Below, piece after piece: positions 2,871 through 48,300 of a DNA stretch of 64,000 bases. The DNA lies in contig CDRNST010000093.1 of assembly GCA_977016875.1 (NCBI GenBank), positions 62,001 to 126,000 on the forward strand. The letters run 5' to 3'. The position numbers and the translations under genes are program-made. A model generated the notes under the pieces. The model did no database searches and was not told where the DNA came from. It saw nothing but the letters and a program-made list of their open reading frames with translations. Source of the DNA: Pavona decussata (taxonomy: Eukaryota). The stretch's first letter is position 1; each line of letters starts with the position of its first letter.

Positions 2871-4639
2871 ACTATCACATATTATATTAACACAGTTACT
2901 TTACACTACATTGCATTATAAGACAAAAAAAAAACATATCCCGGCCACTGAAATTGATGTGTAGCCGTTTGGTCTCAATATACCGGTGTCTAAGGGTGTG
3001 ATATTTTTAACTTGTACAGAGTAAAAGTATCTGGCCGGGATATGTATATGCAGCATATTTATCAATTGTCGCCCACATGCTGGCTCAAGAAGTCACTCGG
3101 AACTATGTGATAAAGCAGCAAATCGTGTAGGATTTACACGCTCTATTGCCTCGTGTCAGTGCATCATGTATGTAACTTCTAGGGTACCCAACGGTTTACT
3201 TCGGCATATATCTGCCAGTTGGATGGCCTTAATCGCCTCAGAAATTCGGGTTTCGTCGTAAAGAACATCTTCAGTTTTCTTCACTAGAGAACTAATATTA
3301 TTCGTTTCGTTTTCAAAGGTGCATGTATGTCGTTAAAAAGGAGGGGAAAAGGTCATCTAGCATTTTCATCAAACTAACAACAAGTACATTAGGTGAACAC
3401 GATTCCGTTTTCTGAAACCATATGCAACCTAAGCAAGGTTGGCAATATTGGCGGGGAAGCAATATGATCTTGGAGATTATGGCCTGCTCCAAGTACCTGC
3501 TCCAACATGCCCATGAAATTACGCGTAGAAAGTCATTGTCTTCTATACTTCGTACCGGAGTGCATGTGAAAACGAGTGTTGTGATCCCAATTAGGTGTAA
3601 GATGGCATTTTTTTGCTTGTAAATTGAAAAATAAAACCTGGCGGCTGAAAAACGAGCTCTGACTCCAACTGTACTGAGTGTTACCCAACATGGCTCCCAG
3701 GGTCTTTCACCTCCCCACCCCATCCCAGAGTTAGAGAGGTTGTCTCGTACGCCCACCATGGCTATGCGTTTGGTTGTATGTCCCCACGAGGTATGATCGA
3801 AGAAAGCTTTAGTCATGTGAACGCACCCAAGGGGAAACGTAGGTGTAAAGCAAAATAAGGGTGGTTTAATTTCTCGCGCAGTCGTTCGGTGAATTATATT
3901 TTTCGAGAGGTTGCAAAATTGGCGAAATATATCACACGTTGTACAGATCCATTTTGAAGATTAAAATGCCAGTGCAATCAGTTAACTTTGATTTGTAAAC
4001 CATCTGAACCGATCTTACAACAGCTAAGTTTTCTCAAAATGTTAGTCTTGATCATTTTGCTCAGGTTGGATACTAAGTTACAAAAAGTTTAGATGCCGAA
4101 TATAATAATTCCAAAAATCTGGCATTCTTTACATAATATGTTGCCGTGGCAACGGTTCCTAAGATACGAAACCAACGGATAATTAAAAATTTAAGAGGTC
4201 ATTTAACGTTTCTAGAATCCAGGCTGCATGCAATTTTAAGAGAAAAGGCTACCGGAAAACGTCAGCAGCTCAAACTCGACGTGGTTTGTGTAGGTACTAA
4301 TTATAATTTTAAAGAATAAACTGCAAAGGACCGCAGAGAAAATGCTGCAAGTTTACGCAGGATCTGTAAAAGATCTAATCAGCCAAAAATAAACATAACC
4401 TAATTTTAAGAGCATGGTTGTCTTTTCTCCCCTCCCACCACTCCACATATATTTTGTTTGCGTTGCCTCACTTCCAGTTTTCAGCTTCACTTAGAACTAC
4501 GCAAGCTTCGTAGTTCGCACATTTTGAGTCAGTTAAATTGTGCGTTTACCACAATCGTCAGTAGTTGATTTTTCTTTTTAAAGGATGGATTTACCTTTAG
4601 GAGAAAATTTATTCTTTGATCCTACAACTGGAAGACTTT

Positions 4640-4868
4640 ATGCCCAATCGAGAAACGTAGTCCCACAATTGATGAGTTCATGCAAGATCCCTCAAGATAT
4701 CCCAACTACGTGTTAACGGTGAATTATGAAAACGGAAAAATGGAGATAAAGAATAAAGCCTCTGCTCAGAGGCAATCAGATTGTCAAGTGGTCACTGGAA
4801 TGGCCGCTGATGGCTTTTTTCAACCGTTCAATGCATTAATCATGGACGTTGAACACGAACGTATATGA
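4640..4868 (+). CDS. Small GFF-motif protein P1 (putative precursor/substrate peptide); start uncertain, possible 1-nt frameshift near the 5' end
   Basis: ORF 4680-4868 reads MQDPSRYPNYVLTVNYENGKMEI...DCQVVTGMAADGFFQ and is clearly homologous to P2. Homology continues in frame upstream of 4680 (SPTIDEFMQDP vs KKVDVDKYMEHP), and an out-of-frame ATG sits at 4640. Confidence 0.72.
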
Positions 4869-5851: not shown

Positions 5852-6601
5852 ATGTCTAAGGGCAAAGAGTTCACAGTGGCCATATATGCCGACGAGTACA
5901 GACAGATTTGCGCTTGGGTTTTAAAGAACCAGACTCTTGAGACAGGAGGCGATTTGTTCGGTCTCTGGGCGGACGATCGCACCGCTGTCATCCAACTGGT
6001 GTTGGGTCCAGGAGAAAACTGCCGAAGAGCGCCTCACTCCTTCTACCAAGACGTGCAATATCTTGAAAAGGTTGGCTCTGACTTGACCGGAAAGGAAGCA
6101 CTATGTCACATCGGCGAGTGGCATTCGCATCACACGATCGGTCTCACACGACCAAGCGGTGGCGATGAAGGAACCGTATGGAGGAACATGCCAAACTACG
6201 GCCTGAACCGCTTTATTCTGTTTATTGCCAACATTGGATCGCGGTCTCATTCTGAAGTAAGCGTCGGCTGCTTTCTGTTTGAATTTGAGAAAGGATCCAG
6301 CCGGAAGCTGCCGGTATTAGAGGGAAGCTTCGAGCTCTTGCCGGATGAAAGCCCCTTCCGTTCAAAGTATGTCAGCGCTTTGGGGAAAGGGGCAGAGTAC
6401 ATCAACAGTGAAGAAGACATCACTGGTCTGGAGGAAATATCAGCTGATGCGGCCGAAAGAAACACAACGCGACCTGTGATGTCTCGTAAACGGAAGAGAC
6501 CACACGTGGAACATCAAAATGAAGATGAAGAAAGAGACGTTAAAGCTAAAACCGTAAAAAGGCTCTACCCTCCTGACACATCTGTTTTTACTAGTCATTA
6601 G
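5852..6601 (+). CDS. JAB/MPN+ (JAMM) metallopeptidase (JAB-B), near-identical core to JAB-A, with an NLS-like tail
   Basis: ETGGDLFG and IGEWHSHHTIGLTRPSGGD motifs. The C-terminal tail contains RKRKRP...KTVKR. Confidence 0.88.
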   Translation: MSKGKEFTVAIYADEYRQICAWVLKNQTLETGGDLFGLWADDRTAVIQLVLGPGENCRRAPHSFYQDVQYLEKVGSDLTGKEALCHIGEWHSHHTIGLTRPSGGDEGTVWRNMPNYGLNRFILFIANIGSRSHSEVSVGCFLFEFEKGSSRKLPVLEGSFELLPDESPFRSKYVSALGKGAEYINSEEDITGLEEISADAAERNTTRPVMSRKRKRPHVEHQNEDEERDVKAKTVKRLYPPDTSVFTSH

Positions 6602-7493: not shown

Positions 7494-7706
7494 ATGTCTT
7501 CTCCTAAGAAAGTGGACGTTGACAAATACATGGAACACCCAGAGAATTTTCCGAACCAAGTGCAGGTGATGAATTATGAGAATGGAAGGTTTGAGATTAT
7601 GTCTGAAGCCGAAGCTCGTACAAGAACTGATCGCCAAATCGTAAGAGGGATGGCTGCTGATGGCTTCTTCCTACGGCTTACGTACGTCGAACATTCTGGT
7701 CACTGA
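7494..7706 (+). CDS. Small GFF-motif protein P2 (70 aa)
   Basis: ATG at 7494 in AACATG context. Reads MSSPKKVDVDKYMEHPENFPNQVQVMNYENGRFEI...TDRQIVRGMAADGFFLRL. Paralog of P1. Confidence 0.8.
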   Translation: MSSPKKVDVDKYMEHPENFPNQVQVMNYENGRFEIMSEAEARTRTDRQIVRGMAADGFFLRLTYVEHSGH

Positions 7707-9810: not shown

Positions 9811-9863
9811 AAAATATATTTTATTCTTTTCCAGAGAGGTTGCCCTCACTGACGATAAGCACG

Positions 9864-11156
9864 ATGCATGAGGTACAAGATGAACGTAAAGTTGTCTGCT
9901 TTCTGCAGCCCAATTTTACTGATGTCCTTAAAAACAACGACGCTGGTGAAAAACGGTTTTCTGTGACTGTATTTGACGACTGTGACACGCTTCACGTCCG
10001 GGTTCATTGCAACGATAAATCGTCTAATCCAGAGCCCGAGAAACGCGTCGCGTTCAAGGTCTTTAAAGAGCTGCCTCAGTGTTCGGAGATTTTAGATATT
10101 GCTTCTAGTCTCATTTCCAGCCTCCCAGCCCTTGATGTACCACAGGTCGCAATTTTGGTTTCCGAAGACGACCATGTCAGAGCTTGCGTGAGACCAAAGT
10201 CAACCGAACTGCTAGAACAAGCAGCCGTCCTTCGCCAACCACGAAAAGCCCAGCTCTACTCCCGAAGCCATGGCATACTGGAGTCGAGTCTTCTGGAGGA
10301 CCGCAAGGTTGCAGTAGTCGGGCTCGGTAGCGGTGGTTCCCAAGTGGTTATAGAGCTTGCTAAGGCTGGAGTTGGCAAGTTTATACTGGTCGATTTCGAT
10401 CGAATCGAGCTTCACAACATCGTCCGCCATGTTTGTGGTTTAAGCGATCTGGGACGCCTGAAGACCAATGTCATGCGAGACCGTATCTTGGACAAGAACC
10501 CGTTCGCTGAGGTGGAAATCTACAACACCAACATCAACAATTTAGAAGACGCCAGAAAAATTCTCACGGGAAGCGACATTATCATCGCAGCCACAGACAA
10601 TATCAGAAGCAGGCTTAACATCAACACCCTGTCCATAGAGCTTGGAATTCCCACCTTGTATGGGAAATGCGCTGTGAGAGCTGCAGGAGGAGAGGTGCTG
10701 CGTGTGAGACCGAAGGTAGGTCCTTGCTTCTCCTGCATCTATGCGGATGCATCTATGGAAGCTGCTGCAGAGGAGATGTCTTCCTTCCGCCAAGCGCGCG
10801 AGGCTAATCCACCATACGTTGGAGACGATGAAGTGAAAGCTACCATTCAAGTTGGGCTGTCTTCTGACATCAACCCCGTGTCTAATATGCTAGTGAAGCT
10901 TGCTCTGGTGGAGCTGTGTCGTGGTAAAGACAGCGCTCTGAAGACTCTGGAGAGCGATCTGGAGGCTCCATACTACATGTGGGCCAATCGCAGAGAGCAG
11001 CAGTATGCCGGGTACCCAGCAGATGGCTTCCACAGGTTTGACAAGCCCGCTATTCTGAGGTGGTACCCAATGATGAGCGAAAGAAAAGCTGACTGCAAAA
11101 CTTGTCAAGACATGGAAGTGAGCGAGGAAAATGTCGATTTTTTCGCTGGAAAATAA
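9864..11156 (+). CDS. ThiF/MoeB/E1-like adenylyltransferase with an unassigned ~140-aa N-terminal domain
   Basis: LYSRSHGILE..L..RKVAVVGLGSGGS (GxGxxG), DFDRIELHNIVRH, GRLKT, ATDN and two Zn-binding CxxC motifs (CFSC, CKTC). The first ATG is at 9864. A splice-acceptor-like ttattcttttccag ends at 9834, so an upstream exon is possible. Confidence 0.92.
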   Translation: MHEVQDERKVVCFLQPNFTDVLKNNDAGEKRFSVTVFDDCDTLHVRVHCNDKSSNPEPEKRVAFKVFKELPQCSEILDIASSLISSLPALDVPQVAILVSEDDHVRACVRPKSTELLEQAAVLRQPRKAQLYSRSHGILESSLLEDRKVAVVGLGSGGSQVVIELAKAGVGKFILVDFDRIELHNIVRHVCGLSDLGRLKTNVMRDRILDKNPFAEVEIYNTNINNLEDARKILTGSDIIIAATDNIRSRLNINTLSIELGIPTLYGKCAVRAAGGEVLRVRPKVGPCFSCIYADASMEAAAEEMSSFRQAREANPPYVGDDEVKATIQVGLSSDINPVSNMLVKLALVELCRGKDSALKTLESDLEAPYYMWANRREQQYAGYPADGFHRFDKPAILRWYPMMSERKADCKTCQDMEVSEENVDFFAGK

Positions 11157-12618: not shown

Positions 12619-12852
12619 TCACCAACGCATAAAGCCTCCAACATCGTTTTCCTGTGAGATATGTTCACTAAAACTGAAGAATCCCCCTGAGCCGGCTTTA
12701 TTCATGTCCAGCATGACCGTCCTGTCGGAATTTTGGGCTTCGTGTTGTGGTTTCACCATCAACTTTCCGGTGGCGGGATCAAAAACCAGAGATTCAGAGC
12801 TGCCTCCTCTGTTCTCAAGATGTTGTTGAATACGCTGTGGGTTTGAAGACAT
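12619..12852 (-). CDS. Small GFF-motif protein P3 (77 aa)
   Basis: MSSNPQRIQQHLENRGGSSESLVFDPATGKLMV...SDRTVMLDMNKAGSGGFFS...DVGGFMRW, with ATG at 12852. Confidence 0.8.
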   Translation of the reverse strand: MSSNPQRIQQHLENRGGSSESLVFDPATGKLMVKPQHEAQNSDRTVMLDMNKAGSGGFFSFSEHISQENDVGGFMRW

Positions 12853-13337
12853 CTTGGAAGTCTGACTTGCAAAACAGTGACTAAACAGATTCTTTTGCTT
12901 TGTACTGCAACGATTAGCGCAAACAGAATATCCCCAGTTATCCAAGTTCGCTTTCACAAGTTTCGCTAGTGCTTGCTTTCGCTTCCGTGCTCTACGGACT
13001 CAGTGCTTTCGGTTTCGAGCGCAGCTTCTTTGTTATGTGATTGCGGGCATGACGTCATCCATATGATTTTGTTTTCTTGGAATTTGAAGGGACTTTTTGA
13101 CAACTGTCGAGTCATGCCCTAATAGGGAAATAAGCGGAAGTAGGGTCTTGTGTAACAAAAGGGTTTTTCCCTGATAAATAAAAAATGAAAGCGCAACAAT
13201 AAATTATTGTTGACGACGACGTGGGTATAATATTCTGCAGAAAAGGAGACGGGAGTGATTATTTGATTTCCTAAGTTATTCAACAGAATATCCTAGCGAC
13301 ATCCTAAACAGTAATTGAATATAAAAAACGCATTGAC
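12853..13337. promoter_or_regulatory. Probable bidirectional promoter region between divergent P3 and P4
   Basis: CTTTCGGTTTC (reverse complement GAAACCGAAAG, ISRE-like) 13006-13016, TGACGTCA (CRE) 13050-13057, TTCTTGGAA (GAS) 13074-13082, and AAATGAAAGCG at ~13183. Confidence 0.45.
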
Positions 13338-13661
13338 ATGGACCCAACCGAGGAGAACAACCAGCAGAACGAAAGAGAATTTGACTTCCATTTTGTCACG
13401 AGGAAGGACGAAGAAACGAAAGAGGAAGATGGCAGCACAAGTGCAGTGAAGTCAGAGGTTGTAGCAAGCCGACTGAAAGTTATCGCTAAAGGTGGACAAG
13501 ACAACACGAAAATGGAAAGATTGGTGTTTGATCTCAAGAGTGGAAAATTAACTGTGGAGACAGAGTCAGAGTCCACCCAGCTTGTAGTATCATCGCCTGA
13601 GAGACAGGTGATAGAGGGAATGGCCACCAGTGGGTGGTTTGCTGGGGACAGTTTGAACTGA
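13338..13661 (+). CDS. Small GFF-motif protein P4 (107 aa)
   Basis: ...MERLVFDLKSGKLTVE...PERQVIEGMATSGWFAGDSLN carries both family motifs. Confidence 0.8.
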   Translation: MDPTEENNQQNEREFDFHFVTRKDEETKEEDGSTSAVKSEVVASRLKVIAKGGQDNTKMERLVFDLKSGKLTVETESESTQLVVSSPERQVIEGMATSGWFAGDSLN

Positions 13662-14713
13662 ATTCAGCATACAAACAACAATCTTGGCTTGGATATCTCA
13701 TGTGGATAGGCTTTAAAAACACTGACCAGTTACATTGCATGACTATTCAATTCCATGACTATTTAATTAATGCACCGGGCATGTAAAATCCTTAGAACAT
13801 TTGGAACCGACATATGTTAGAGTTAGCAGAATAAAATGAAAGCGTGACGTTGGGCTTGTGTTGACCTTGACCAAGAGAACTAAGGCACTAATATCATGGC
13901 TATGTAACTCTCTGGGTTGATAATGAAAGGAAAGTCTGTTTCTGTCAAGAGTAGTTTAGATAATTGCGATTTCTTAGAAACCTGGCTCGTTACATGTAAT
14001 AATGACCCTGACATTATCACTTTAGCGCGTTCAAAACATTTCTTAGAAAAAGAGGAAGACTTAATTAAACCTGTCAAGTGTCAAAAATGACGGGAAAGAA
14101 ATACAATAGCCGACGAGGTGTGGAATTTTCCTTTCGACATTTCTAACCCTCAACGGCATGCACTGAAATATGTCACGACAGATAAAATAAAAGCGTGGTC
14201 TTGCAGTAGAGGCCTGAGGCACAAAAAGGGAAAATAAACTCTCCAGTTGCCAATAGAGAGACTGTCTGTTGAGAGTAGTTCATATAAGACTGGTTTTTAA
14301 GAGACCTGCCTCGTTAATTATGACTCTACCATGAAAACTCGTGCAACAATACTGAAAAACATTTCTCAGAAAATGAGGAAGACTAAACTCCAGCTGTCAA
14401 ATATTGGCATGGTATGGATAGGTATGGATAGGGTTTTATTTTCGACTAAAGCCAAATATTTCAATGTCGGGGTAGTTCAACGTTCTTTTGTAAAAAAGTT
14501 CCCAAATTAAACTCTCTCACGCAAGGAGTAATTGATGGTAAACAACGACTGATGAATGAATGAAATTGAAATTTTCTCGGAAACCACACCGTCTGGTGCG
14601 CATGTGCACTCGGGAACAGCAATGCAAATTAATAACAGAAGACGCCATTTGCACAAAGTTCCACACAGTTCACGGTGATAGTGCAGACGAGCGATTTATA
14701 GCGGGATAAAGCT

Positions 14714-16168
14714 ATGGCAGCCAAGAGAAGTAAGTGCCCGAAAATTTACATGTACAGTAAAGATCGTGAACGGCTAAACAAGTTTGTCAGTGAACATAAA
14801 GATGGGGAAACTAGCGGCGATCTGTTCGGTTTGTGGACAGACGACAACGAGATCGTTATTCACCTAGTTACAGGACAGGCCGGAAGTGACCAGCATCAGG
14901 CTGAAAAGCGCTCGGCCTCATCAAATACGGAGGATGACACGAAAAATATGAGAAAAGCTTTGATGAAAACTTTCGGGCTCCCTCGCATTGGACAATGGCA
15001 GTACACGACCGACGAAAATAAAAGCAGAAGTATGATGGTGGCAGCCCTACGAGGCGATAAAGGATTATTTAAAAAAGAAATCGAAATTTCGAGAGCTCTG
15101 CTCATCACAGGGAACTACGACCGATCTGAGGTGCAGTTATCCCCGTATCTTGTGTCCACCACCTCAGTCTCAAGCAAAGGGGAAATTGACACCCTTGAAG
15201 ACGAAAGTATCTTCAGGCAAGTTGACGAAATTAGAAAGATTACCGGCGAAACAGTGGCAAGCGTAAGTGGCCGAGAAGTAAATGAAAGGAAAGGCGAGAT
15301 GAACAAAGGCCCAACCACCATTGATGAAAGTAGCTACAAGAAAGCGATCACCAGTAAAGAATCCGTCGAGACCGGTGTGGGACATAGCAATCTTGATTCA
15401 ATGTGGGAATCATACGAAAGGATACCAAGGGCACAACTAGGCCGTACCAACCCTTTAACGGTTTACGTGTTTCAGGAAGACCTAGATATGGTGTCAAGGC
15501 TGGTTCTTGCGTATCCAGATGTGGAAACTGGGGGAGACTTGTTTGGTTTGTGGACGTCCGAGGGTGATGCAGTGATACACATAGTACTAGGTCCTGGAAA
15601 ACATTGTAGCCGTACAAACGTGTCCTTCAACCAAGATATCCCTTACCTAAAGAATAACGGTGAGCTCCTTACCCAAGACTACATGTTATGCCACATTGGA
15701 GAATGGCACTCCCATCATCAGCTGCGCCTCTTCCGTCCCAGCGAGGGAGACTCAACGACCGTGATTAGGAATTACCCCCAGAGTGTCCTAGGGTTTATCT
15801 TGATCATTGCTAACATCGTGGAGCGTGGCAGGGCGGTGAAATTGTCGCCCTATCTATATACGCAGAAATCCAAGTTTACCTATGACAAAGAGGGGAAGGT
15901 TATTTCTTTACCAGCTCGAAATGTCTTCAAGGAAGTACCCAATGTTCAGAATGTCATGGAAGAAGGAAAGGAGACGGAGCAAGACGTCCAGCGCTATTGG
16001 ACGTCGCGTCATCAGCAGTACCAGACGGCTAGGAGAAAGGGTCACCCTTGTCGAGGCCTATCACCGGCAAGAACCTATCCACCGGGACACGGCAGCACGG
16101 AGGAACCTATGGATGTGGATCCTCCTGAATATGCGCACAGAAATAGGCAATCAAAAGCGAGGCGTTAA
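14714..16168 (+). CDS. Tandem JAB protein (JAB-C): N-terminal degenerate JAB plus C-terminal intact JAMM
   Basis: Domain 1 has ETSGDLFGLWT...IGQWQY and lacks HxH. Domain 2 has ETGGDLFGLWT...IGEWHSHHQLRLFRPSEGD. Confidence 0.88.
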   Translation: MAAKRSKCPKIYMYSKDRERLNKFVSEHKDGETSGDLFGLWTDDNEIVIHLVTGQAGSDQHQAEKRSASSNTEDDTKNMRKALMKTFGLPRIGQWQYTTDENKSRSMMVAALRGDKGLFKKEIEISRALLITGNYDRSEVQLSPYLVSTTSVSSKGEIDTLEDESIFRQVDEIRKITGETVASVSGREVNERKGEMNKGPTTIDESSYKKAITSKESVETGVGHSNLDSMWESYERIPRAQLGRTNPLTVYVFQEDLDMVSRLVLAYPDVETGGDLFGLWTSEGDAVIHIVLGPGKHCSRTNVSFNQDIPYLKNNGELLTQDYMLCHIGEWHSHHQLRLFRPSEGDSTTVIRNYPQSVLGFILIIANIVERGRAVKLSPYLYTQKSKFTYDKEGKVISLPARNVFKEVPNVQNVMEEGKETEQDVQRYWTSRHQQYQTARRKGHPCRGLSPARTYPPGHGSTEEPMDVDPPEYAHRNRQSKARR

Positions 16169-16629
16169 TTAAGATTCTTCCCTGAGCTACAGTGGCATAA
16201 TTCCCGAGATGCACAGAGCCGTAACCCTTCCTTATGAAGAACTGAACACCTCAAACATAGTAACATAGACTGAACGCCGGAATTTCATATTTTTTACCCG
16301 TGATCGATCTGTTAAGCGTCCAAGTGTGGATTTCCCTCTTAAGTGTCTGTAAGGATTCTTGATAGGCCAATCGAGGGCGTTTAACGCAAATTTGTAAAGC
16401 TTCACTGTCACTATTGTACAGTCACTGCTATAGTGACTGAGATTGCAACCACCACAAGTAGAAGGCCTTCATTTATCTGTCCTGAGTACGTAAATAAATT
16501 ATAAAATTGTAGTACTGAGGTTTTAAAATAACTATGTATCCAATTGAAGTTCCACTTTAATCGAGATTAGTTTTAATGATCAAGCGTCAATGAATGTAAC
16601 TAAGTTTGAAATGCGTCATTAAATATACA

Positions 16630-16824
16630 NNNNNNNNNNNNNNNNNNNNNNNNNNNNNNNNNNNNNNNNNNNNNNNNNNNNNNNNNNNNNNNNNNNNNNN
16701 NNNNNNNNNNNNNNNNNNNNNNNNNNNNNNNNNNNNNNNNNNNNNNNNNNNNNNNNNNNNNNNNNNNNNNNNNNNNNNNNNNNNNNNNNNNNNNNNNNNN
16801 NNNNNNNNNNNNNNNNNNNNNNNN
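16630..16824. other. Assembly gap (N run)
   Basis: Run of n characters. Confidence 1.
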
Positions 16825-17874
16825 TATCAAACAACAGAAAGACAACACTAGTTGGTGGGTGATTTTAGACTCGTTGTTTCGGAATTGAGCAGGATCAAAA
16901 GAGAAAGTAAAAACAACCGGAGGCAGGGAGTTCCACTGAAGTATAGTTCTAGGCTAAAAGGACAGTCTGTGAGAGGTAGTAGAAGTGGAAATCGGAATGA
17001 AGGAGTGATCATCTTTTATTCTGCGGATTGGTGAACGCAAACTTGTCTCCTTGATTCACTGCAAGTAAGTTGCTAGTGTTCTTATACAACATGGTTAGGC
17101 GCGCATCGACTCTTCTCTGCTCTAGGGTTCGCCAGTTGAGCTCTTTAAACATCACTGTCACGCTTGCTAATTGCTGTTATCTCCCCAGTGCCTATCTGGC
17201 GGCCCATCGCTGCACCATTTCCAAGTTATAGGAACCATTCTTTTATACGCCCGTACGAGGGTCCCAAACATTACTACAGTATTCCAACTGAGGCGTAGTT
17301 ATGATGCGTTTGTTGCAAACCGGCCCCTGGTTTTTGCTGTTACCAAAGTTTGAAGAGATTTTGCCTTAAATGGATAGCTTGTTGGATGACATTCAACGTA
17401 TGCTTAGTTGATGTTATGGGCTATGACGCTGTTGGAGGGGCTGTGACGTCATCCAAAATGGTTGTCAAGATGGCATCTGTAAATAGGGTACAGATTTCTT
17501 CCTGTTTTACAGGAAAGGAAAGTCGATAAACATAAATATTTTGTGACTCTCAAATCAAGATAAAGAAATTGCGGCAAAAGCATAGCTGACTACCAACCGA
17601 TTTTCCAGCGCTTTCTTTCTTGTACACTTGGAGGAGGAGCCCCTCCCAGTTTTGTTGTTGTTGTTGTTGTTTATTTATTTTAGTTTTGTTTTGTTTTAAT
17701 TGTTTTTTGAGTAATCTTTAGCAATTTCTGCGCAATTCGGTGCAAATTTCCAGTTGCTGTAGAGCGATTTGAAAGAAAAAAGAAAAGAAAAATTAATATT
17801 TGGAAGATGAGTGGTAGTATCGACAGAGAAAAAGTAATTTTCTGTATTCCCCAAATAGCAAGATGCTGTTCAAT

Positions 17875-18250
17875 TTTAGTCTCGAGTCTTTTATCATCAG
17901 AGGTAATTTTAAAAGAACCTGACTAGAAAAATCGTAAGTATTGAATATGGCCTCAGTGAATCCAGACGACACAACATTTCCGAGAAAAGCCCGAACGGAT
18001 AAAATGCGCCATGCTAAAACAGTTCCTAATATTTACATACATTTGAATATATGAAGATTAAACCGAAGGGAAAATAAAAACTGCATCTAGGAACGTTCAT
18101 CTTGAAATTAAAAACTTTGAAGAAATCGGCGACGATAGTGAAACCTGAGGCTTTTCAAACGATAAAAAGTCGGACGCGTTTCTTGGAAATTGTAAGACTT
18201 ATAGCACATTTGTAAAGTATGAGTTACTTCTACTCCGTGATCTGACAACC
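17875..18250 (+). repeat. Orphan duplicate of the JAB-E upstream region
   Basis: Colinear similarity to ~24165-24597, e.g. cacaacatttccgagaaaagcc.gaacggat.aaatgcgccatgctaaaa and taggaacgttcatcttgaaatta. No JAB ORF follows it. Confidence 0.8.
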
Positions 18251-18472
18251 CACCCTGTGATTTTGATAGGCTATGTCGGTGTAAGTAGGGCTATACTGCA
18301 AATAAACTTCGCATTTTTATTCTCAAGTTATACTGAGTAAAAATGAAGGTGTTCAGGGAAATGGCTTGGCCCTATTTATATGCCACTGTATTAGTAACTC
18401 GACTCAAAATAATTGACGGTGTCAGTTTTGCTGCTATTTATTTTGTTATAGGTATATCTTTCCACCTACTTT

Positions 18473-18515
<43 letters not shown>

Positions 18516-18516
18516 G
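18473..18516. repeat. (CTGT)n microsatellite
   Basis: Direct reading. Confidence 0.95.
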
Positions 18517-18969
18517 ACTGTTTGTCCGCCGGTTTGACTGTCTATAGATGTATCTACCAAAAGATCTGGATATTAGCAGATATGTCGATATTCTAAGAAA
18601 CCAGACAACACCTTTTACATGTTTCGATCTTCTTAGAGCATCCTAGATTTTCTTAGAGAATCCTAGATCACGCTCCTACCACCTTTCAACTTAAGACAAA
18701 AGAAGCCATTCATATTCAATGGGAAAAACCTACACTTAATCATCAACTGTATCATGTTATTTTAAAACTTTCTCTGTAATATTTTACATTGTCATGTTTC
18801 CTTTGTGCTTATAGTTAATCAGCATTTTGGTTTACACTATATATTCAACTCTGTGCTTTGTAATTTAAACTGAAGATGACAGAAGTTTCTGTCGAAACAT
18901 GTTTCCAAATTTAAAAAGTGTTGTGTGGTTTCTTAGAATATCCACCTATCTATCCACCTCAATGTGTCT

Positions 18970-19283
18970 CTATCTGAGTGTCTCGCTAGCCTCAAGGCTC
19001 CAGAGCTGAGAGATGATGCTGTTTGATCGCCACCTCTTAGTGAAGAAACCACCTGATTCGATTTTGTACAAATCGACCATAACAGGTCTTTCGCCGGTAG
19101 ACCCAGGGGCTATTCGTCGTGTTTGTCTACAACAACATATGAAGGAAAACATCGTTGTGAATTGTAGATCTCGTCTCGGCATCACCTTCAACTTCCCTGT
19201 CGTTGGGTCAAAAAACAGTTCTTCCCTGACCTGCCTCTTCTGCTCTCTAAATGTTCTTGAATTTCGCATGGGTTGGATGACAT
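18970..19283 (-). pseudogene. Small GFF-motif protein P5, frameshifted paralog of P3
   Basis: ATG at 19283 gives MSSNPCEIQEHLESRRGRS (compare P3 MSSNPQRIQQHLENRGGSS). A frame change near 19225 then gives EELFFDPTTGKLKV...GERPVMVDLYKIESGGFFT. Confidence 0.75.
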
Positions 19284-20272
19284 GTTAGAAAACAAACTCA
19301 AACAACGGACCAGTGGTACGTACGCGTTAATAGTTTGCTAACTTACACGATCACGAGGATGCTTTACGTACGGGTCAGAGAATTCGGGACGTCCCGAGAC
19401 TGAGGATTTCAGTGATATCGGACACTGTTCAACATCTGCTCTTTAGAGTTCATAGATACAAGCAACGCGCTGTAAACCGTTCTCTTCCCGTATTAGAAAT
19501 TGAAAGCAATGTCCAAATCAAAAGCTTAAGTCACTTCTCTGTGCCTTATAAGGTTATCCGCATAAATTCGTTTCGAGCAGAATAAATTACAATACTGATT
19601 CTCTCATGTCGTCTTAGCATTAGTTACCCTCATTGTGACAGGGGAATAAATGTATCTTAATCTGTAGAAAGTGTGTTACATCAAATCTTATCCTCCGAAT
19701 GTCAGATCGTAGCTGCTGTTATTTCTTCTAAAAGCCCTGAGCGGCGGGCTTCAATACAACTTTCTTGTCCTCGTTAATTTTATCAATGGTGCGACGATTT
19801 TTCAGGGAAAAAGTCAAGTGGTTCTTCAGATTTAATCCGGATAGTAGATTGGGGAGACTAATAACTTACTCAGCTGGTGCCCGTGAGATTTGTCTGAGAC
19901 TGAAATATTACCTCCGCTTGTGACATTCGTGACCGACCCGAATTGAAGTAATGGAAAATATTTCGTTTTCAAAACGGAAGTTGTGTATTTCGTTTATGCA
20001 GTTTATGATTCGAAGCGGCTGACAGAAACTAAGATTCGGTAATGCCAGTTGCAACCTATTGCGTTTTCCGGTTTAATACTAATCATGAATAAACCGAAGA
20101 ACAAACTTTAAATTATTGACGTATTATGGGAAAATAAATTTGCGTAATCAACATAGGCTTGCTACGTCCGTTCTTTCCGAGAAATCAGCTCATTGTTCGT
20201 TGCGCATGAGCAAACGCTAATAAGCGAAACCGTTGGAGAGAACTTTCTTTAGCAACGGCATTTGTTTGTGAA

Positions 20273-22417
20273 ATGCTCTCGTTAACTGGGCAAACGACTA
20301 TGGAGAGGTTGCAGAGAACCAGTCAAAGAGCTTTTATTTTCGAAGGAGATTGGAAGAGACTTCTCGCTTCCAAGACAACCCAAGAAAGACAAGGAAATTT
20401 GTTCGGCTTGTGGACAAGCGAAGGTGATCCTGTTATTCATATCATAACTGAATCAGACTGTTGTCCTAAGAGTAAACATTCTCGATTTAGTCTGGCTGAC
20501 TTCCCCGACAACCGTTTCCCTCTCGTGCATATCGGTAACTGGCGTTATGTTGGTCCTTCTTCTGCACATGTTGAAGATGAATCAACCACCCTTGCCTCTG
20601 ACTATTCCAGGTCTTGTCAGAACACAGAAGACTATTTTCTAAATATGATTATCACTGAGTCTGATATTACCCTGGAATACCGGCGCAATTTCAAGATGAA
20701 AATTTTGTTTCTTCCTAACGAAAGCCCGTTCAGGCGCTTAGCAGCTATGGAAAAGATCACCATCAAAGGCCACGACGAGAATACCGACTACGAGCTGAAG
20801 GAATCATTCGTCAAAGAGGATTACCCTACCAGACCGAGACATCATCAAATCGAAGATTCAGACGCAGATGACTTAGAAGATACACTGGAGACTTCAATCG
20901 CTAAAGGCGAACGGAAGGCCTTTATTTTCAGAAAGGATTATGAAAGCCTCCGTTTAAATGCAACTCATGGCGAAAGGCAAGGAAATCTGTTTGGCTTGTG
21001 GACAACCAACGGTGAACCTGTTATTCACGTTATTTGTCGACCGAACTGTTGTCCCAACAAGTATGACTACTCACGCCTTGGAGTAGACATCTTCAGCAAT
21101 GATTTCCCTCTCACACACATAGGCAACTGGCTTTATACCGACGTTTCGTTCTCTCATGCCCTTCCCATGAAATCACGTGGGCTTGACTCTTCATGGTGCC
21201 CTCACCAAAGCAAAGCCACCGGCAAATTTCTAGACGTCGTGATCCTAAAGTCAGCAATCCTGGTGTTACAAGATGGGCGAGAGAGGGAAATTGAGCTTCT
21301 TGACGGCAGAAGCCCGTTTAGGGACATGGAAGGCTTTAAAAGGATCGCCATAAAAGATCAGTACGATGATTTTACTACTGAGCTGGAGGAACCGATGAAA
21401 CACCTTTCAGTCACTTCAAAGCGTATCTCTCCGCATCAAAGAAAGGAAATGTCAAGTTCTCCAGATTTTGAAGATCCGCCAACATACCGTGATAGTATCT
21501 CCAGTAGAGATGGTTGGCAGGAAGGCCCAATGTATCTGGGGACGCCAGGATTTCAGCGTGACTTTACAAGCAACAGCGATGATTTCAAGGTCTTCATCTT
21601 TGAGGAGGACCTCCAAATGATGGCGAAACTCGTTCTCAAGTACCCACACCTGGAGACCGGAGGAGACCTGTTCGGTTTATGGACCACTGCAGGTGACGTA
21701 GTACTACACATTGTACTTGGCCCAGGTCAAAACTGCAAACGAACTGGAGCTTCCTTCTACCAAGATATCTCTTATTTGAAGCGAAATGGTGAGCTGCTTA
21801 CTCAAGACTACATGTTGTGCCACATTGGGGAATGGCACTCCCATCATCAGCTGCAGCTTTTCCAGCCAAGCGGGGGTGATTCATCGACCGTTATAAGAAA
21901 CTACCCTCGTGGAGTCTGTGGTTTCATTTTGATCATTGCCAACATTCTGTCATCACGTGAAGTGCAGTTGTCTCCTTATCTTTACACACAAGGGTCCAGT
22001 TATAGCTTTGATAAAAAAGGCAAACTTGTACGACTGCCTGCGCAAAGAAATGCATTTAAGACAATTCGAAGGATCAGAGATAGCATCGAGAGAGGAAAAG
22101 AAATTCAAACGCATTCCCCAAGTTTTTACCGTGACGAAGAGGACGTGAGGAACGCCTATGATCCCAGAAGACACCCAACCCAAACTGGAAAGACCATGCA
22201 AAAGATGAGCCAGGCCCGTGATCCCATGACATACACAAGGCAAAACCGTAATTACAAACAACTGCATCGACTACAAACTCGTACGCCCACTGGCCAGCTG
22301 AGCACGCCTCCGCGAAGAATATCTTCCAGTTCGAGACTGTGTTGCTTTCCAAGTAATCGTCACAAAACAGCAAGGTACAACAACAGACCGGACAATCGAC
22401 CTCCTTGGAGACATTAA
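20273..22417 (+). CDS. Triple-JAB protein (JAB-D): two degenerate JAB domains plus one intact JAMM
   Basis: ERQGNLFGLWT...IGNWRY and ERQGNLFGLWT...IGNWLY both lack HxH. The third domain has ETGGDLFGLWT...IGEWHSHHQLQLFQPSGGD. Confidence 0.88.
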   Translation: MLSLTGQTTMERLQRTSQRAFIFEGDWKRLLASKTTQERQGNLFGLWTSEGDPVIHIITESDCCPKSKHSRFSLADFPDNRFPLVHIGNWRYVGPSSAHVEDESTTLASDYSRSCQNTEDYFLNMIITESDITLEYRRNFKMKILFLPNESPFRRLAAMEKITIKGHDENTDYELKESFVKEDYPTRPRHHQIEDSDADDLEDTLETSIAKGERKAFIFRKDYESLRLNATHGERQGNLFGLWTTNGEPVIHVICRPNCCPNKYDYSRLGVDIFSNDFPLTHIGNWLYTDVSFSHALPMKSRGLDSSWCPHQSKATGKFLDVVILKSAILVLQDGREREIELLDGRSPFRDMEGFKRIAIKDQYDDFTTELEEPMKHLSVTSKRISPHQRKEMSSSPDFEDPPTYRDSISSRDGWQEGPMYLGTPGFQRDFTSNSDDFKVFIFEEDLQMMAKLVLKYPHLETGGDLFGLWTTAGDVVLHIVLGPGQNCKRTGASFYQDISYLKRNGELLTQDYMLCHIGEWHSHHQLQLFQPSGGDSSTVIRNYPRGVCGFILIIANILSSREVQLSPYLYTQGSSYSFDKKGKLVRLPAQRNAFKTIRRIRDSIERGKEIQTHSPSFYRDEEDVRNAYDPRRHPTQTGKTMQKMSQARDPMTYTRQNRNYKQLHRLQTRTPTGQLSTPPRRISSSSRLCCFPSNRHKTARYNNRPDNRPPWRH

Positions 22418-23424
22418 TCACTTCAGTGTAAACAAAACGATGTGTGAACTGAACTATAAATCAGACCCATCAACTTAAAACGGCAGAAAAAAACTAAATT
22501 CATGGATAGCCATGAATTGCGATTAGTGTATAGTATATATACATATACGACGTAGACCAGCGTTGTCCATTTATAAGACATGTAACACTGCAATGGTCTG
22601 ATTGATGAATAGTCTACTGTAAAACCTCCATGGCTAAGTTCAACTTGAAGCTGTAGAGAAAACGACATTGATAATATTTTATTAGTCATGAATCGGGCAT
22701 ACATATGTAGTAGATATATTTGCACGGGCTGAACATTTCGCCAACACTAGTAGCAAAGTTTTGTAACACCTCAATAGTCAGGTGGTAAAAGCTCCACAAC
22801 TAAGTTCAAAGAAGTGTTCTTTGCGGTTCAGAAATTCCTCTAAGTGGGTTGTTAGGTGCACTAAGACAAGGTCCAATACCTTCAAATAACGTGATCGCGT
22901 CTAGATGATTTGTAAAGTTTCGATCTTAAACACCTTCAGTTTACCATATTATAGAGTAAGTTTGTGTTATTAGAATTATATTTATACCCGCATTCAAACA
23001 CTTGCAGATTTTGTTGTGTATATATTTTACTAGAGTATAACGTCCATTGTATGCTTTGTATGCTGTATCTAGTTTATAGTTCATCCCTCTCCTATCAATT
23101 TTCCTGGGTGCTATTATGTCAAAACTAAATAATGACTGATGAATAATTATGATAGCGATAGGTACTAGATGCATGATCTCAGTAAAATGTGCACTGAAGA
23201 GCTTTTATAACATATTGCATAGTAAGAGCTAAGGTATAACGTTAACACAGCACTCAAATATTTTGTACATGAACATAGTTTTCTTGTAACACACATGATG
23301 CGAACGTGTAAAGTTCTGTAAAGTTTAATTAAAAATATAGCTGCATTGAGGGTGTGTTACAGGTACTGATGTTACGGACCCATTTCATCACTTCCAAGAA
23401 AAGCCGGATCATAATGATTGTGAA

Positions 23425-24110
23425 TCAGGGCTAAATTTCAACGATCCTCTTCGAAAGTAGACTGTTTAAGATAGCGTGACCTACTATTAGTAAATGATAT
23501 TATATTTATTGCAGTTTGATTTGGAAAAAAATCTCAAACAAAAATTGTGATAATTGATAAACTTTTGAGCAAAAGACAGAAGACCAACGGAGCATTTTTA
23601 TTTCAAAGTTGCTACCGTCTCGTTTACATTTCTGAGAAAAGCTTCATTACACTTCATGTTTATTCACAAGAAAATGGAATGAAATGTTTTAAAAGGGTAC
23701 TCGATGTAGCTCTGAAAATTCCGAGCTATCTTCACTACCCATTGGAGCGAGTGTTACATCCACTAACGTTATATACAGACCCATTAATTGATTTATATTA
23801 CATGTAATGCGATCAATGTAACATCACTTCGGAGAAACGCCGAATATTATTGTCACTTCAGGGCTAAATTTAAACGAGCCCCTTCGAAAGTAGAATGTGT
23901 GAGATAGCGTGACATATTCTATTGTACAGTGAACGCTAGATTTGGAGAAAAAATCTCAAACAAAAATCAGGATTGTTGCTGAATTTTCGGCAAAAGATTA
24001 AAGACCAAATGAAATCTTTTGTGTCAAAGCCTTCAATCGCTGCGTTTACATTTCTGAGAAAAGCTACATTGCACTTCATGTTTATTCACAAAAAAAATAA
24101 ATGAAAGCGT
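23425..24110 (+). repeat. Diverged tandem duplication (~260-bp units at ~23425-23690 and ~23857-24110)
   Basis: Shared blocks tcagggctaaattt, cttcgaaagtag, aatctcaaacaaaaat and cgtttacatttctgagaaaagct. Each unit contains TTCTGAGAA. Confidence 0.8.
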
Positions 24111-24609
24111 ATATTAAATGAAGCGCTGAAAATGTCGACCTGTTTTGATGTGTAATAAATATAATTTAGCTTCTGAGTCTTCTAACGTCAGAGGTAATTT
24201 CAAGGAAGCTGCAGACAAGAAAAATCACAGGTATTGAATATGACCTACGGTAAGTCAATCCGCGATACAACACAACATTTCCGAGAAAAGCCGGAACGGA
24301 TGAAATGCGCCATGCTAAAATAATTCCAAATATTTACATATGTGAAGAAATGAAAGAAAAAGAAAAGAAAACTTAACATAGGAACGTTCATCTTGAAATT
24401 AAGAATTTTAACAAAATCGGTGACGATGCAGTGAGAAAATTAAAAACATTGGAACCTGACGCTTGTCAAACGATGAAAAGTCGAACGCGTTTCTAGGAAA
24501 TTGTGAGGCTAGTAGCGCATGATCAATCTAATATATTAACACAAATCGAAAGCTTAATTTTCATAACGACAGTTGCTTCGACTCCGTGGTCTGAAACGCC
24601 AGTATAAAA

Positions 24610-25875
24610 ATGGACGTTCTTCGTAATGCGTTTGGCTTTGGAGCGCGTTTTAAAGTCCACATGTTTCACGAAGACGTTGACAGGATGACGCAACTAGTTC
24701 TCCGTCATCCAGCGAAAGAAACAGGAGGTAATCTGTTTGGTTTGTGGACTCACGACCAAGAGCCTGTTTTGCACATTGTGCTTGGACCAGCTAAAGGCTG
24801 CACACGAACGGAGGTCTCTTTCTACCAGAGCATTCCATACCTGGAGCGTGTTGGGAAGATCCTTACGGAACAGTACCAGCTCTGTCACATTGGAGAGTGG
24901 CATTCGCACCATCGACTACATCTCTCGGAGCCAAGCAGCGGTGATTCATCGACCGTGATTCGAAATTACCCCAGAGGGACGTGTGGTTTTCTTCTCATCA
25001 TTGCCAACATAAAGCCAAGTGGGGAGGTCACCCTATCGCCGTACCTTTACAAAGAGGGACAAAGAGACTATGAAAAAGGTGAAGTTCACATTATCCGTGG
25101 CTCATTGCAGAGTCCATTCAGTAAAGTGGAATACATACTGAAAAACATAAATGATGGCGAAGATTGGAGTACGACTATTAACGAGCAAAGGCCGAGGGTA
25201 AATTATGGGCAGAATCCGCCTGTCCCTGCAAAAAATGACGAAGAGCCCTGTGTTTACATGTTCCAAGAAGACGAGAAGATGATTAAGGAGTTACTTCGGG
25301 AACGTGGTACCGGCAAGATTAACATTGAGGGAGAATTGCTCGGCTTGTGGACAACTCGCAAAGAACCTGTGTTGCACGTCGTCCTCAGGCCGAACAGTAA
25401 CAAGAAGGAACAACAGCCATTTAACCATCCTCTACAAGAGGCCGAGGAAAAGCCAGGGGAAAGCCTTTCAAAAGAGTATCCATCCTTGCAAAATATCGGA
25501 AGATATGTTCTTCGAGATAATTCTCTGCCAAATCCAAATCCAAATCCTGAAAAAGGAAGTTTAGAAGAAGCTTACAGGATCTGCCAAGAATTTCCTTACG
25601 GGGGTGTTTTGGTCGTAGCTTATTGTGTGGTAGTTGACGCCGAGGAGCAACCTGCTTTGGCTGGGTATGTATACCACGGCAATCCGGATAAATGTCAGTC
25701 ACTTGAAGTAAGCATCCTTTCTGGTACAAAGATCTACAGTGAAAAACAGGAGCCAAACGGCAAGATTGAGGAACAGGGAGGCAAAGAAGGAGACACCAAA
25801 GGGGATCTAATAGATTTCGACGAAAAGCGGCCTGACTCCCCCAGTGGAAACTTCGGACAGGATACGTTTGTCTGA
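24610..25875 (+). CDS. Tandem JAB protein (JAB-E): N-terminal intact JAMM plus C-terminal degenerate JAB
   Basis: ETGGNLFGLWT...IGEWHSHHRLHLSEPSSGD, followed by a second domain VYMFQED...IEGELLGLWT...NIGRYVL that lacks the metal ligands. Confidence 0.88.
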   Translation: MDVLRNAFGFGARFKVHMFHEDVDRMTQLVLRHPAKETGGNLFGLWTHDQEPVLHIVLGPAKGCTRTEVSFYQSIPYLERVGKILTEQYQLCHIGEWHSHHRLHLSEPSSGDSSTVIRNYPRGTCGFLLIIANIKPSGEVTLSPYLYKEGQRDYEKGEVHIIRGSLQSPFSKVEYILKNINDGEDWSTTINEQRPRVNYGQNPPVPAKNDEEPCVYMFQEDEKMIKELLRERGTGKINIEGELLGLWTTRKEPVLHVVLRPNSNKKEQQPFNHPLQEAEEKPGESLSKEYPSLQNIGRYVLRDNSLPNPNPNPEKGSLEEAYRICQEFPYGGVLVVAYCVVVDAEEQPALAGYVYHGNPDKCQSLEVSILSGTKIYSEKQEPNGKIEEQGGKEGDTKGDLIDFDEKRPDSPSGNFGQDTFV

Positions 25876-26749
25876 TTGTAAAGCTTTATATGCTGATCTG
25901 CGTTACAATTCCCGAGCTCAGATGAATTGTTAAGAACTGATAGAGAGCTCGCCAGACTCCAAGGACACTAAAGTATTAATTATAATCTGAAAAAATTAGT
26001 CAAGTATATACAGAACGAACATAACGAACTATCCTTATGCCTTTAGTTAAGAATAATATTAAACACTAATTATAAATTTCTTGAGATGCTAAGGATATCC
26101 CAAATTAGGGATATTGAGTTCATATTTTCGTTTCATTTTCGTTTGATCTCTCAGGCCGCCCGGAAGTGTTCTCATCAGTATAGTGAAAAAGGTAGTTTAG
26201 CTCCGCGCAGTTCAATTTTGCTTTCAGGAGTAACAAACGGCAAATCATACGGGATGGTAACAGTTAACAGCTTTTACGGTCATACTATTGGATGTGTCTG
26301 GTGTGAACTGATTTAGTAATCAAGATTATAGAATGACTAGTACTTGATTTCTTGGAAACACGAATGTATCGTCAAAGTTTCAGACTAAATATATTTTTTT
26401 AAAAACCCAAGGACGTCAAAATTGCACTTTGCAAGTCTGCTCGTTTTCTGAATTGTGATGCAAAGGCAATTTAATTCATTTTCTAATGACCTGGAGTTTT
26501 ATACCTCCTCATAACCCAACTCCTACAACCTCTCACTGCTGACTGAAACGATCGCGGTCTCTTTAATGGCTTTCGCGGAAAATTGCGCATGCCCTATAAT
26601 TTCCGCTTTCATTTTAGTCAAACATCTTCCGCGAAGCAAAGTCGACATTGCCAGCGCGTTTCTCTCGCTTTCATTTCAAAGCCGAACTAAGCTACTGAGT
26701 CTTCAGTCTTGTGATTATTTCTGCTTGACCTGAGGTGTGTGAAGCAAGT

Positions 26750-27010
26750 ATGGAGGATAAGAGTAACCGGTCAACCAGGCCATATGACACAGGCTACAGC
26801 GAGTCGTTAAGAGACAGAGCGGCGGTGGTAAACTACAGCAATCGGCGACCACAAGAGGCAAGACAGGAGCGGCTTCACTTTGATATGGATACCGGACGAT
26901 TGATGGTGAACAATTCGCCCGAGGAACAGCCAGCTCTGCCGGATAGAGGACCCGTGCCAGACCGTCCTGTTCTGGATAAAATGGCTTCTCAAGGTTTCTT
27001 TCTTGACTGA
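26750..27010 (+). CDS. Small GFF-motif protein P6 (86 aa)
   Basis: ATG at 26750. Reads ...QERLHFDMDTGRLMV...PDRPVLDKMASQGFFLD*. Confidence 0.82.
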   Translation: MEDKSNRSTRPYDTGYSESLRDRAAVVNYSNRRPQEARQERLHFDMDTGRLMVNNSPEEQPALPDRGPVPDRPVLDKMASQGFFLD

Positions 27011-31417: not shown

Positions 31418-31627
31418 ATGTCCGATTCCAAAGACACCAGATCAGGAAATGGCAAGGTTGGATCACAGAAGTACAATCACAACGATGACGATCAGCCACC
31501 ATCTAACAGTGTTGCCGCGTCCGAGCCCGAGATGGAAACACTGGTTACACCGGGTGCCCAAGACTATCCTGACCGTCCTGTGGTAAGCAGTATGGCTGCT
31601 CAAGGATTTTTCGCGGACTCTGAGTGA
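31418..31627 (+). CDS. Small GFF-motif protein P7 (69 aa), lacking the FD..TG.L segment
   Basis: CCACCATG Kozak context at 31418. Reads ...EMETLV...PDRPVVSSMAAQGFFADSE*. A splice-acceptor-like cctttttgcag ends at ~31385. Confidence 0.78.
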   Translation: MSDSKDTRSGNGKVGSQKYNHNDDDQPPSNSVAASEPEMETLVTPGAQDYPDRPVVSSMAAQGFFADSE

Positions 31628-37281: not shown

Positions 37282-37331
<50 letters not shown>

Positions 37332-48125: not shown

Positions 48126-48300
48126 AGTGACACAGGCAAACTCGAAGAAAAGGAAATCCGAATGCTCCTACCAGGAGTCAAACCTAAGATCTTCCGTTTA
48201 CTAATTCGGATGCTCTACCACTGAGCTACAGAAGACTCGTGAGAGCCTAGGCCATTAAACTAGGTTCATGGGACAAACACCTGGATACTGCTAGGATTTG
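48126..48300 (-). mobile_element. tRNA-derived SINE, same family as 44720
   Basis: gtgacacaggc...aacctaagatcttccgttactaattcggatgctctaccactgagctac contains reverse A and B boxes. Confidence 0.7.

Follow-up and report, generated by a model that had tools for sequence, protein, structure and literature searches.

A 64,000-nucleotide (nt) stretch of the genome of the coral Pavona decussata (contig CDRNST010000093.1, here C93, positions 62,001 to 126,000; hereafter the window, numbered from 1) carries seven genes for short peptides, P1 to P7, interspersed with an E1-like adenylating enzyme and five JAB peptidase genes. Comparison of these sequences with bacterial operons identifies the peptide family as a fourth constant component of a Cap2/Cap3-related gene set, in the order JAB-E2-peptide-E1, that is found in bacteria, anthozoans and a sponge. 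Family members consist of a short helix, a hairpin of the form L-V-F-D-P-x-T-G-x-L-x-V, a flexible spacer, a D-x-V-V block and a terminal G-F-F (or G-F-A). The peptide is probably a modifier or substrate of a Cap2/Cap3-like cascade that is made as ubiquitin-style precursors, with the hairpin as its sole folded recognition element.

Seven coral peptide genes share one layout

A preliminary description of this DNA had drawn attention to the motif L-x-F-D-x-x-T/S-G-K/R-L-x-V in P3 to P6, with variants in P1 and P2, and had proposed that it is a beta-hairpin leader or docking element upstream of the G-F-F motif. All of the strings quoted there are present in the six-frame translation of the window, in which we counted strict and loose forms of the motif and compared them with 300 first-order Markov simulations. 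The strict pattern was found 4 times (0.0 expected) and the loose pattern 6 times (0.03 expected). The span assigned to the element, 12760-26910, leaves P1, P2 and P7 outside, and P7 does keep only E-T-L-V of the hairpin (31535-31546), as had been stated. The spacer of ~8 to 30 amino acids (aa) described earlier holds for the distance to a D/E-R-x-V block (9-30 aa) but not for the distance to G-F-F itself, which is 21-44 aa. Every hairpin lies in a short open reading frame (ORF) that also holds the D/E-R-x-V block, followed by M and then by G-F/W-F. Two elements had been missed: an N-terminal helix, x-x-I-Q-x-H-L-E, and another canonical hairpin upstream of P1 in a different frame (4609-4644). 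The peptide genes are as follows.

4585..4868, + strand: P1; ORF 4680-4868, variant hairpin N-Y-E-N-G-K at 4713-4748
7494..7706, + strand: P2, 70 aa; variant hairpin 7563-7598; orthologues P0157, P0170 and P0178
12619..12852, - strand: P3, 77 aa; hairpin codons 12754-12789, G-F-F codons 12676-12684
13338..13661, + strand: P4, 107 aa; hairpin 13521-13556; ends in G-W-F and a 6-aa tail
18970..19269, - strand: P5; hairpin 19183-19218; long spacer with a C-C-C/basic insert
26750..27010, + strand: P6, 86 aa; hairpin 26873-26908; G-F-F and a 2-aa tail; 12 orthologues
31418..31627, + strand: P7, 69 aa; without hairpin; D-R-P-V...G-F-F block kept

A profile built from the seven peptides matched exactly 14 places genome-wide, seven in the window and seven in a colinear copy on contig C63. 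The copies on C93 and C63 are 98.5-100% identical, too close for an estimate of the ratio of non-synonymous to synonymous substitution rates (dN/dS), which was dropped. A more sensitive profile added an eighth member, the hairpin upstream of P1 and the helix of P5. This helix lies in another frame than the rest of P5 (19191-19337), while in the orthologue P0199 the two elements share a frame; similarly, the P1 orthologues P0132 and P0144 carry both hairpins within one ORF. The 30-aa spacer of P5, which comprises a hydrophobic stretch, C-C-C and a basic cluster, is kept in P0199 and resembles a palmitoylation or membrane-anchor patch. The eighth, divergent member (148 aa) lies to the left of the window, at L035:1938-2384 (+), equivalent to C93:53938-54384. 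It starts with a myristoylation-like M-G-N-T-A-S, has an S-Y-P-x-F-V-L segment like that of P1 and P2, and continues for ~55 residues after T-G-F-F.

Hairpin and C-terminal block are equally conserved

To measure selection we used the orthologous locus L026, from a coral whose E1 is 89% identical, as the reference for ratios of non-synonymous to synonymous differences per site (pN/pS). Codons 1-59 of P3 show 25.5 synonymous and 1.5 non-synonymous differences (pN/pS 0.02, pS 0.65), compared with a pN/pS of 0.54 for the 18-codon tail after G-G-F-F, 0.11 for E1 and 0.29 for P4. In the P1 copy on C63 the spacer is 12 nt shorter, through a deletion that keeps the frame. In word-based profile searches all seven peptides had orthologues in other corals, including at least 17 for P3 (one of them annotated in Acropora cervicornis) and 27 for P4, whose hairpin identity is 0.92; relatives were also found in an octocoral, an anemone, a sponge and four bacterial phyla. 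Judged from these sequences, the P1-P7 ORFs are real genes.

Within orthogroups, mean pairwise identity is 0.79-0.96 for the hairpin and 0.83-0.94 for the C-terminal block, falling to 0.52-0.76 in the spacer and 0.20-0.53 in the tail after the motif. The hairpin is thus conserved on a par with the G-F-F block in every orthogroup, as the earlier proposal would have it. At its position 9, 87% of bacterial copies have Glu, and 91% of animal copies have Lys or Arg. At the C-terminus the Gly of G-F-F is 95-100% conserved and is always followed by F/W and then F/A, and the shortest ORFs stop at G-F-F or G-F-A. Tandem arrays have D-F-F in place of G-F-F. That F-F outlasts the Gly in some lineages argues for a mature end after the aromatic pair, with Gly, Phe and Phe/Ala all candidates for the last residue, but Phe would be an odd substrate for an E1. 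In Desmophyllum-type copies (L023, L027, P0156) the hairpin T-G-K is changed to T-N-T or T-L-K, and G-F-F to K-F-F or K-W-F.

The peptide has a fixed place in bacterial operons

The coral profile also matched residues 1-90 of a cyanobacterial E1 of 494 aa. In all 27 of the long bacterial E1 homologues (472-522 aa) the peptide occupies residues 1-65, with the same helix, a hairpin L-V/I-F-D-P-x-T-G-E-L-V-V and G-F-F, and only ~4 residues separate F-F from the first E1 strand. The shorter E1 forms (420-437 aa) and the coral E1 start right after the region equivalent to the peptide. In Halomicronema the peptide is instead a free 63-aa ORF between the E2-like gene and E1.

A pattern scan of one genome per bacterial or archaeal species (~186,000 genomes), whose loci were then read with local profiles, yielded 29 confirmed loci, distributed over Cyanobacteria, Bacteroidota, Verrucomicrobiota and Myxococcota. 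At 25 of these the genes follow the order JAB, E2, peptide, E1 on one strand, and a contig end truncates one further locus. The peptide is either free or fused to the N-terminus of E1; three Nostocales loci have one copy of each kind, on one Lujinxingia contig the peptide is joined to the front of E2, and an Acaryochloris plasmid carries orphan copies. The C-terminal motif of bacterial copies is G-F-F, with G-F-A in its place in many Bacteroidota; it is trailed by 0-24 residues that are not conserved, and several ORFs stop exactly at the motif. Head-to-tail arrangements occur in animals: the coral ORFs P0121 and P0188 consist of two or three units, and in the anemone a copy can have as many as four hairpin-like repeats, with its end at G-G-F-F. 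When the best candidates per genome were scored in a sample of 301 cyanobacterial genomes, the peptide was found in the seed genome only, so that in these searches the family appears sporadic in cyanobacteria. The cyanobacterial operons L024 and L031 adjoin STAND/NB-ARC NTPases, a 1537-aa TPR protein, toxin-antitoxin genes, and HNH and GmrSD nucleases, a defence-island-like setting.

The coral enzymes are related to Cap2 and Cap3

The enzymes encoded in the window are as follows.

2139..2870, + strand: JAB1 peptidase, 243 aa; one complete JAMM motif
5852..6601, + strand: JAB2 peptidase, 249 aa; one complete JAMM motif
9864..11156, + strand: E1-like adenylating enzyme, 430 aa from ATG; Pfam ThiF 4.7e-35
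14714..16168, + strand: JAB3, 484 aa; degenerate JAB-like domain, then predicted active JAB
20273..22417, + strand: JAB4, 714 aa; two degenerate JAB-like domains, then predicted active JAB
24610..25875, + strand: JAB5, 421 aa; predicted active JAB, then degenerate JAB-like domain

The E1 locus is single in the genome, apart from the C63 copy. Its ThiF domain covers residues 152-305 of a 438-aa ORF starting at 9840. Among PADLOC models the best match is to Cap2-type E1-E2 (3e-31), and the coral E1 is 45-56% identical to the cyanobacterial E1s that bear the N-terminal peptide. Stony corals provide its best matches overall, among them a Desmophyllum pertusum protein at 70% identity; next in order come an anemone, an octocoral and the sponge Oscarella, ahead of cyanobacteria. 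Bhattacharya et al. 2016 (PMC4878875) had already listed an anthozoan ThiF gene as being of bacterial origin. The fold of the modelled fused E1 is nearest to Cap2 (top Foldseek match 7TO3, the Cap2-CdnD complex), UBA5, ThiF and MoeB. An invariant Cys in R-H-V-C-G, 3 residues past the ATP-binding Arg, is present in 72 of 72 aligned E1s (A2, A4) and is, from this alignment, a candidate catalytic residue of the E1 clade.

The pseudo-JAB domains of the preliminary description are borne out: the three long JAB genes add one or two degenerate JAB-like domains, and a complete JAMM motif is present in each gene. The coral JABs match PADLOC Cap3-type JAB models at 1e-13 to 1e-16, and their domains are 45-47% identical to the operon JABs. 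JAB1 ends in a CaaX-like C-T-M-L and JAB2 has a K-R-K-R-P patch. JAB1+P1 and JAB2+P2 resemble a duplicated JAB-peptide unit of ~3.7 kb, in which the JAB domains are nearly identical and P1 and P2 are 48% identical.

Assignment of the third enzyme as E2-like was based on operon position, an invariant I-C-H motif, a weak match to the UBC-like domain of FANCL (E 0.05) and Atlas language-model features (PF26395 E2-CBASS, score 0.96); a search of the E2 profile against PDB sequences gave nothing significant. An intact coral homologue of 147 aa, 46% identical to the operon E2 and with the Cys-His motif kept, lies 3.9 kb to the left of the window (G000:C93:57699-58142 (-), equivalent to L035:5699-6142). 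Further matches occur on C123 and at C93:773787-786328, where some contain internal stops, for at least 8 E2-like matches in the genome. The C-terminal domain of the bacterial JAB was also considered as an E2/UEV-like domain and was ruled out (hhalign probability 6.5%). The coral cassette comprises seven peptides in the window, a divergent eighth outside it and five JAB genes. Linkage to genes for E1, E2 and a processing peptidase, a mark of beta-grasp modifiers, is found both in the bacterial loci and in the coral cluster.

The hairpin is the one confidently folded element

In the AlphaFold model of the fused cyanobacterial E1, the peptide forms a helix at residues 3-19, strands at 26-31 and 36-41 with a predicted local distance difference test score (pLDDT) of ~84, and a two-residue strand or bridge at 51-52, while residues 59-64, which form the G-F-F linker, have pLDDT <50. 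P3 modelled alone, from a 65-sequence alignment, has a helix at 5-13 and a hairpin at 20-25/30-35 (pLDDT ~82), is disordered past residue 40 and is of low confidence outside the hairpin. Two models thus agree with the original prediction of a beta-hairpin. Foldseek found no match for the P3 model in the PDB at E <= 0.001, and the conserved peptide core is only ~55 aa long, short of the ~70 residues or more of a beta-grasp fold. Given this layout and the lack of a fold match, the models support a hairpin and not a beta-grasp domain.

As to what the hairpin binds, a complex of the coral E1 with P3 residues 1-62, predicted by ESMFold2 without alignments, scored 0.08 and 0.07 on ipSAE (an interface score derived from aligned errors) against a mark of 0.34, values that speak neither for nor against binding. 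Structural alignments of MccB to the fused-E1 model cover only model residues 194-491 and do not reach the N-terminal domain (64-190). This domain was aligned with Atg7 alone, from about residue 64, in whole-chain superpositions with a root-mean-square deviation of 14-15 A; these models hint, weakly at best, at a role of the domain in recruiting E2 rather than as a leader clamp. P7 and its orthologue P0191 both lack the hairpin and keep the C-terminal block, which suggests that the hairpin is probably not needed for recognition by an active site. Together with its standing as the only confident fold, the duplication of hairpin units and the split at position 9, this is more in keeping with a modular surface for docking or identity than with a determinant of active-site recognition. 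Candidate partners of such a surface are the E1 N-terminal domain, E2, JAB and pseudo-JAB.

A processed modifier or substrate is the favoured reading

The operon position, the fusions to the pathway's own enzymes, the tandem arrays, the abrupt change from strong constraint to drift at the C-terminal motif, and the constant company of JAB, E1 and E2 are together what one would expect of a modifier or substrate that is processed and activated at its C-terminus. In the mechanism that we favour, the peptide would be made as a precursor, with a freely evolving C-terminal tail, in a head-to-tail array, or fused in front of E1 (once, E2). The JAB peptidase would then release the C-terminus at or within G-F-F/A, E1 would adenylate the freed end, and the E2-like Cys protein would accept it, after which the peptide would act as a ubiquitin-like tag or substrate without a beta-grasp fold. 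The C-terminal block would be what the active sites see, and the hairpin a docking or identity surface for enzymes or readers.

The analysis establishes the family with its conservation, its linkage to the enzyme genes, its precursor forms and the prediction of a hairpin; cleavage, adenylation, transfer and the partner of the hairpin are inferred, and the scissile bond within the G-F-F/A region is putative. Several observations weigh against this mechanism. E1 pockets do not usually take a C-terminus that ends in a bulky Phe or Ala, and some lineages have replaced the Gly of G-F-F as well as that of the hairpin. The consensus of the E1 alignment has no conserved Cys past the first CxxC, so that there is no evident crossover-loop Cys. 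If P7 functions at all, it does so with no hairpin, and P5 and P7 have only one detected orthologue each. Finally, P1 and P5 carry frame breaks in this assembly (4585-4713 and 19191-19337) that leave their N-terminal parts out of frame. These breaks are either real frameshifts or homopolymer errors; the C63 copy is identical over the 300-nt P5 ORF, including the region of the frame switch.

The preliminary description had likened the hairpin to the leader of a ribosomally synthesised and post-translationally modified peptide (RiPP). On such a reading the E1 N-terminal domain or a pseudo-JAB binds the hairpin, E1 modifies a C-terminal core in the manner of MccB or PaaA, and JAB trims the product to a free bioactive peptide. 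The hairpin fold, its conservation from corals to bacteria and its tie to E1 and JAB genes all stand, as do the match of E1 to MccB and PaaA at the adenylation domain, the layout of an N-terminal recognition element and a C-terminal reactive end, the presence of several precursor paralogues per enzyme, and the tandem hairpins of some precursors, which suggest a modular binding unit. Nevertheless, the analogy fits worse than a ubiquitin-like modifier or substrate, owing to the constantly adjacent E2-like protein with its invariant Cys-His, the ubiquitin-like precursor forms and the failure of the E1 N-terminal domain to align with the MccB clamp. We know of no E1-dependent RiPP pathway with an E2-like protein. 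In addition, the supposed core is the most conserved part of the peptide and not the variable part, and the gene tables of two annotated operons list no transporter or tailoring enzyme with a Pfam annotation (several neighbours have no Pfam match). We therefore regard a RiPP-like pathway as unlikely.

Equally improbable, in our assessment, is a non-covalent role in which the peptide is a subunit or pseudo-substrate of E1, for example an autoinhibitory module whose removal by JAB turns E1 on, with the free coral copies acting in trans, the hairpin as the surface that binds E1, and G-F-F plugging a pocket. Such a role would suit the frequent fusion to the E1 N-terminus with its short linker, and the charge at hairpin position 9, E in bacteria and K/R in animals, as if tracking a partner. 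However, free and E1-fused copies occur together in one operon, one copy is fused to E2 instead, and seven to eight coral paralogues face a single E1; tandem arrays and unconstrained tails are expected of a released C-terminus and not of a subunit. The idea that the motif arose by chance, or that it reflects a conserved DNA or RNA element over which spurious ORFs run in non-coding animal DNA, might draw on the low coding density of the window and the mostly automatic gene calls of public collections, but it is already refuted by the synonymous excess in P3, the in-frame indel in the second P1 copy, the fixed operon position of the bacterial homologues and a chance expectation of ~0, and we dismiss it.

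Comparison with known tagging systems

If the peptide is a modifier or substrate, its closest precedent, by analogy, would be the CD-NTase tail handled by Cap2 and Cap3 in type II CBASS (cyclic-oligonucleotide-based antiphage signalling systems). Cap2 adenylates this substrate, which has no beta-grasp fold, through a disordered C-terminal tail (bioRxiv 10.1101/2022.03.31.486616). The E1 and JAB described here have their nearest sequence or structure relatives in Cap2 (an E2-E1 fusion) and Cap3 (a JAB), the E2 resembles PF26395 by language-model features, and in both systems a substrate without a beta-grasp fold presents a disordered tail to E1. The present set differs from CBASS in encoding E2 and E1 separately, in having as its substrate a hairpin peptide of 55-65 aa with a G-F-F/A end, and in occurring in animals too. 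The gene tables of the Aerosakkonema and Halomicronema operons contain no CD-NTase or effector; the other 27 loci were not scanned for these.

The ubiquitination-like Bil/Bub operons, families 6c-6e of Iyer et al. 2006 (PMC1779556), likewise combine E1, E2, a JAB or other peptidase and a small modifier gene, and in them a peptidase pre-processes the modifier (PMC10557695). Their modifiers consist of 1-3 beta-grasp domains ending in Gly, whereas the peptides here have no beta-grasp domain and end in G-F-F/A. The three precursor styles seen here (variable tails, tandem units and fusion before another protein) are shared with ubiquitin, while fold, length and C-terminal motif differ and fusion is to the E1 or E2 of the same pathway. 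Ubiquitin itself is made as polyubiquitin, as fusions to ribosomal proteins and with C-terminal extensions, and its beta1-beta2 turn reads L-T-G-K, of which the T-G-K turn of the peptide is reminiscent; the hairpin may be what is left of the beta1-beta2 hairpin in an ancestor with a beta-grasp fold. In the MccA/MccB and PaaA pathways a ThiF-type enzyme similarly acts on the C-terminus of a short ribosomal peptide, but these pathways have no E2 or JAB, and their N-terminal clamp is not matched here. Pup, too, is a small protein tag that is largely disordered and has to be processed at its C-terminus; it differs in using Dop/PafA rather than E1/E2 and in having no hairpin.

Assembly context and other features of the window

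The window is part of an 8.96-Mb contig in an assembly of 602 Mb and 1180 contigs. This is an anthozoan nuclear contig, and neither human nor bacterial contamination. The window contains two runs of N, at 16630-16824 and 37383-37855, of which the first lies among the cassette genes.

16630..16824, no strand: assembly gap, 195 N; intergenic, in no family member

This gap starts 462 nt past the stop of JAB3 (16168) and ends 2146 nt before P5. Matches to the hidden Markov model of the peptide family, JAB, E1 and E2 were sought beside it, and none abuts it; listed ORFs that span it are translated N. From coordinates alone, the spacing of P4 and P5 differs by 49 nt between C93 and the C63 copy, so no gene-sized piece seems to be hidden there. 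The finding does not depend on continuity across the gap.

Elsewhere, ORF 36911-37864 (-) has a weak beta-lactamase-family match and crosses the second gap, where its reading frame is not real sequence. A tRNA-Ala(GGC) was found at 40698-40772 (+) by both ARAGORN and Rfam, and a tRNA-like match at 48163-48235 (-) by Rfam only.

Implications for corals and for bacterial E1-E2-JAB sets

Searches of the peptides against Pfam, PADLOC and NCBIfam returned no family, and text searches of the literature, including motif strings, returned nothing on the peptide, its operon position or its animal expansion. Although horizontal transfer of the E1 was already known, these three aspects were not found in earlier work and appear to be new. 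To our knowledge, no modifier has so far been identified for the stand-alone bacterial E1-E2-JAB sets related to CBASS Cap2/Cap3, and the peptide family, with its fixed operon position, is a concrete candidate. The four-gene system is suited to reconstitution in E. coli, where peptides with the hairpin and the hairpin-less P7 provide natural variants for tests of recognition.

More tentatively, and with some doubt, we suggest that the ~55-aa hairpin peptide may be a transferable tag whose cassette entered early-branching animals from bacteria, the hairpin being read by writers, erasers (including the pseudo-JABs) and readers. If the peptide is conjugated, the definition of a ubiquitin-like tag would broaden beyond the beta-grasp fold, and if the tag reading is true, animals would have a second, bacterial-derived protein-tagging system. 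A conserved and strongly selected cassette in corals and a sponge, expanded in the coral, points to an unstudied pathway for protein modification or immunity, of bacterial origin, in reef builders.

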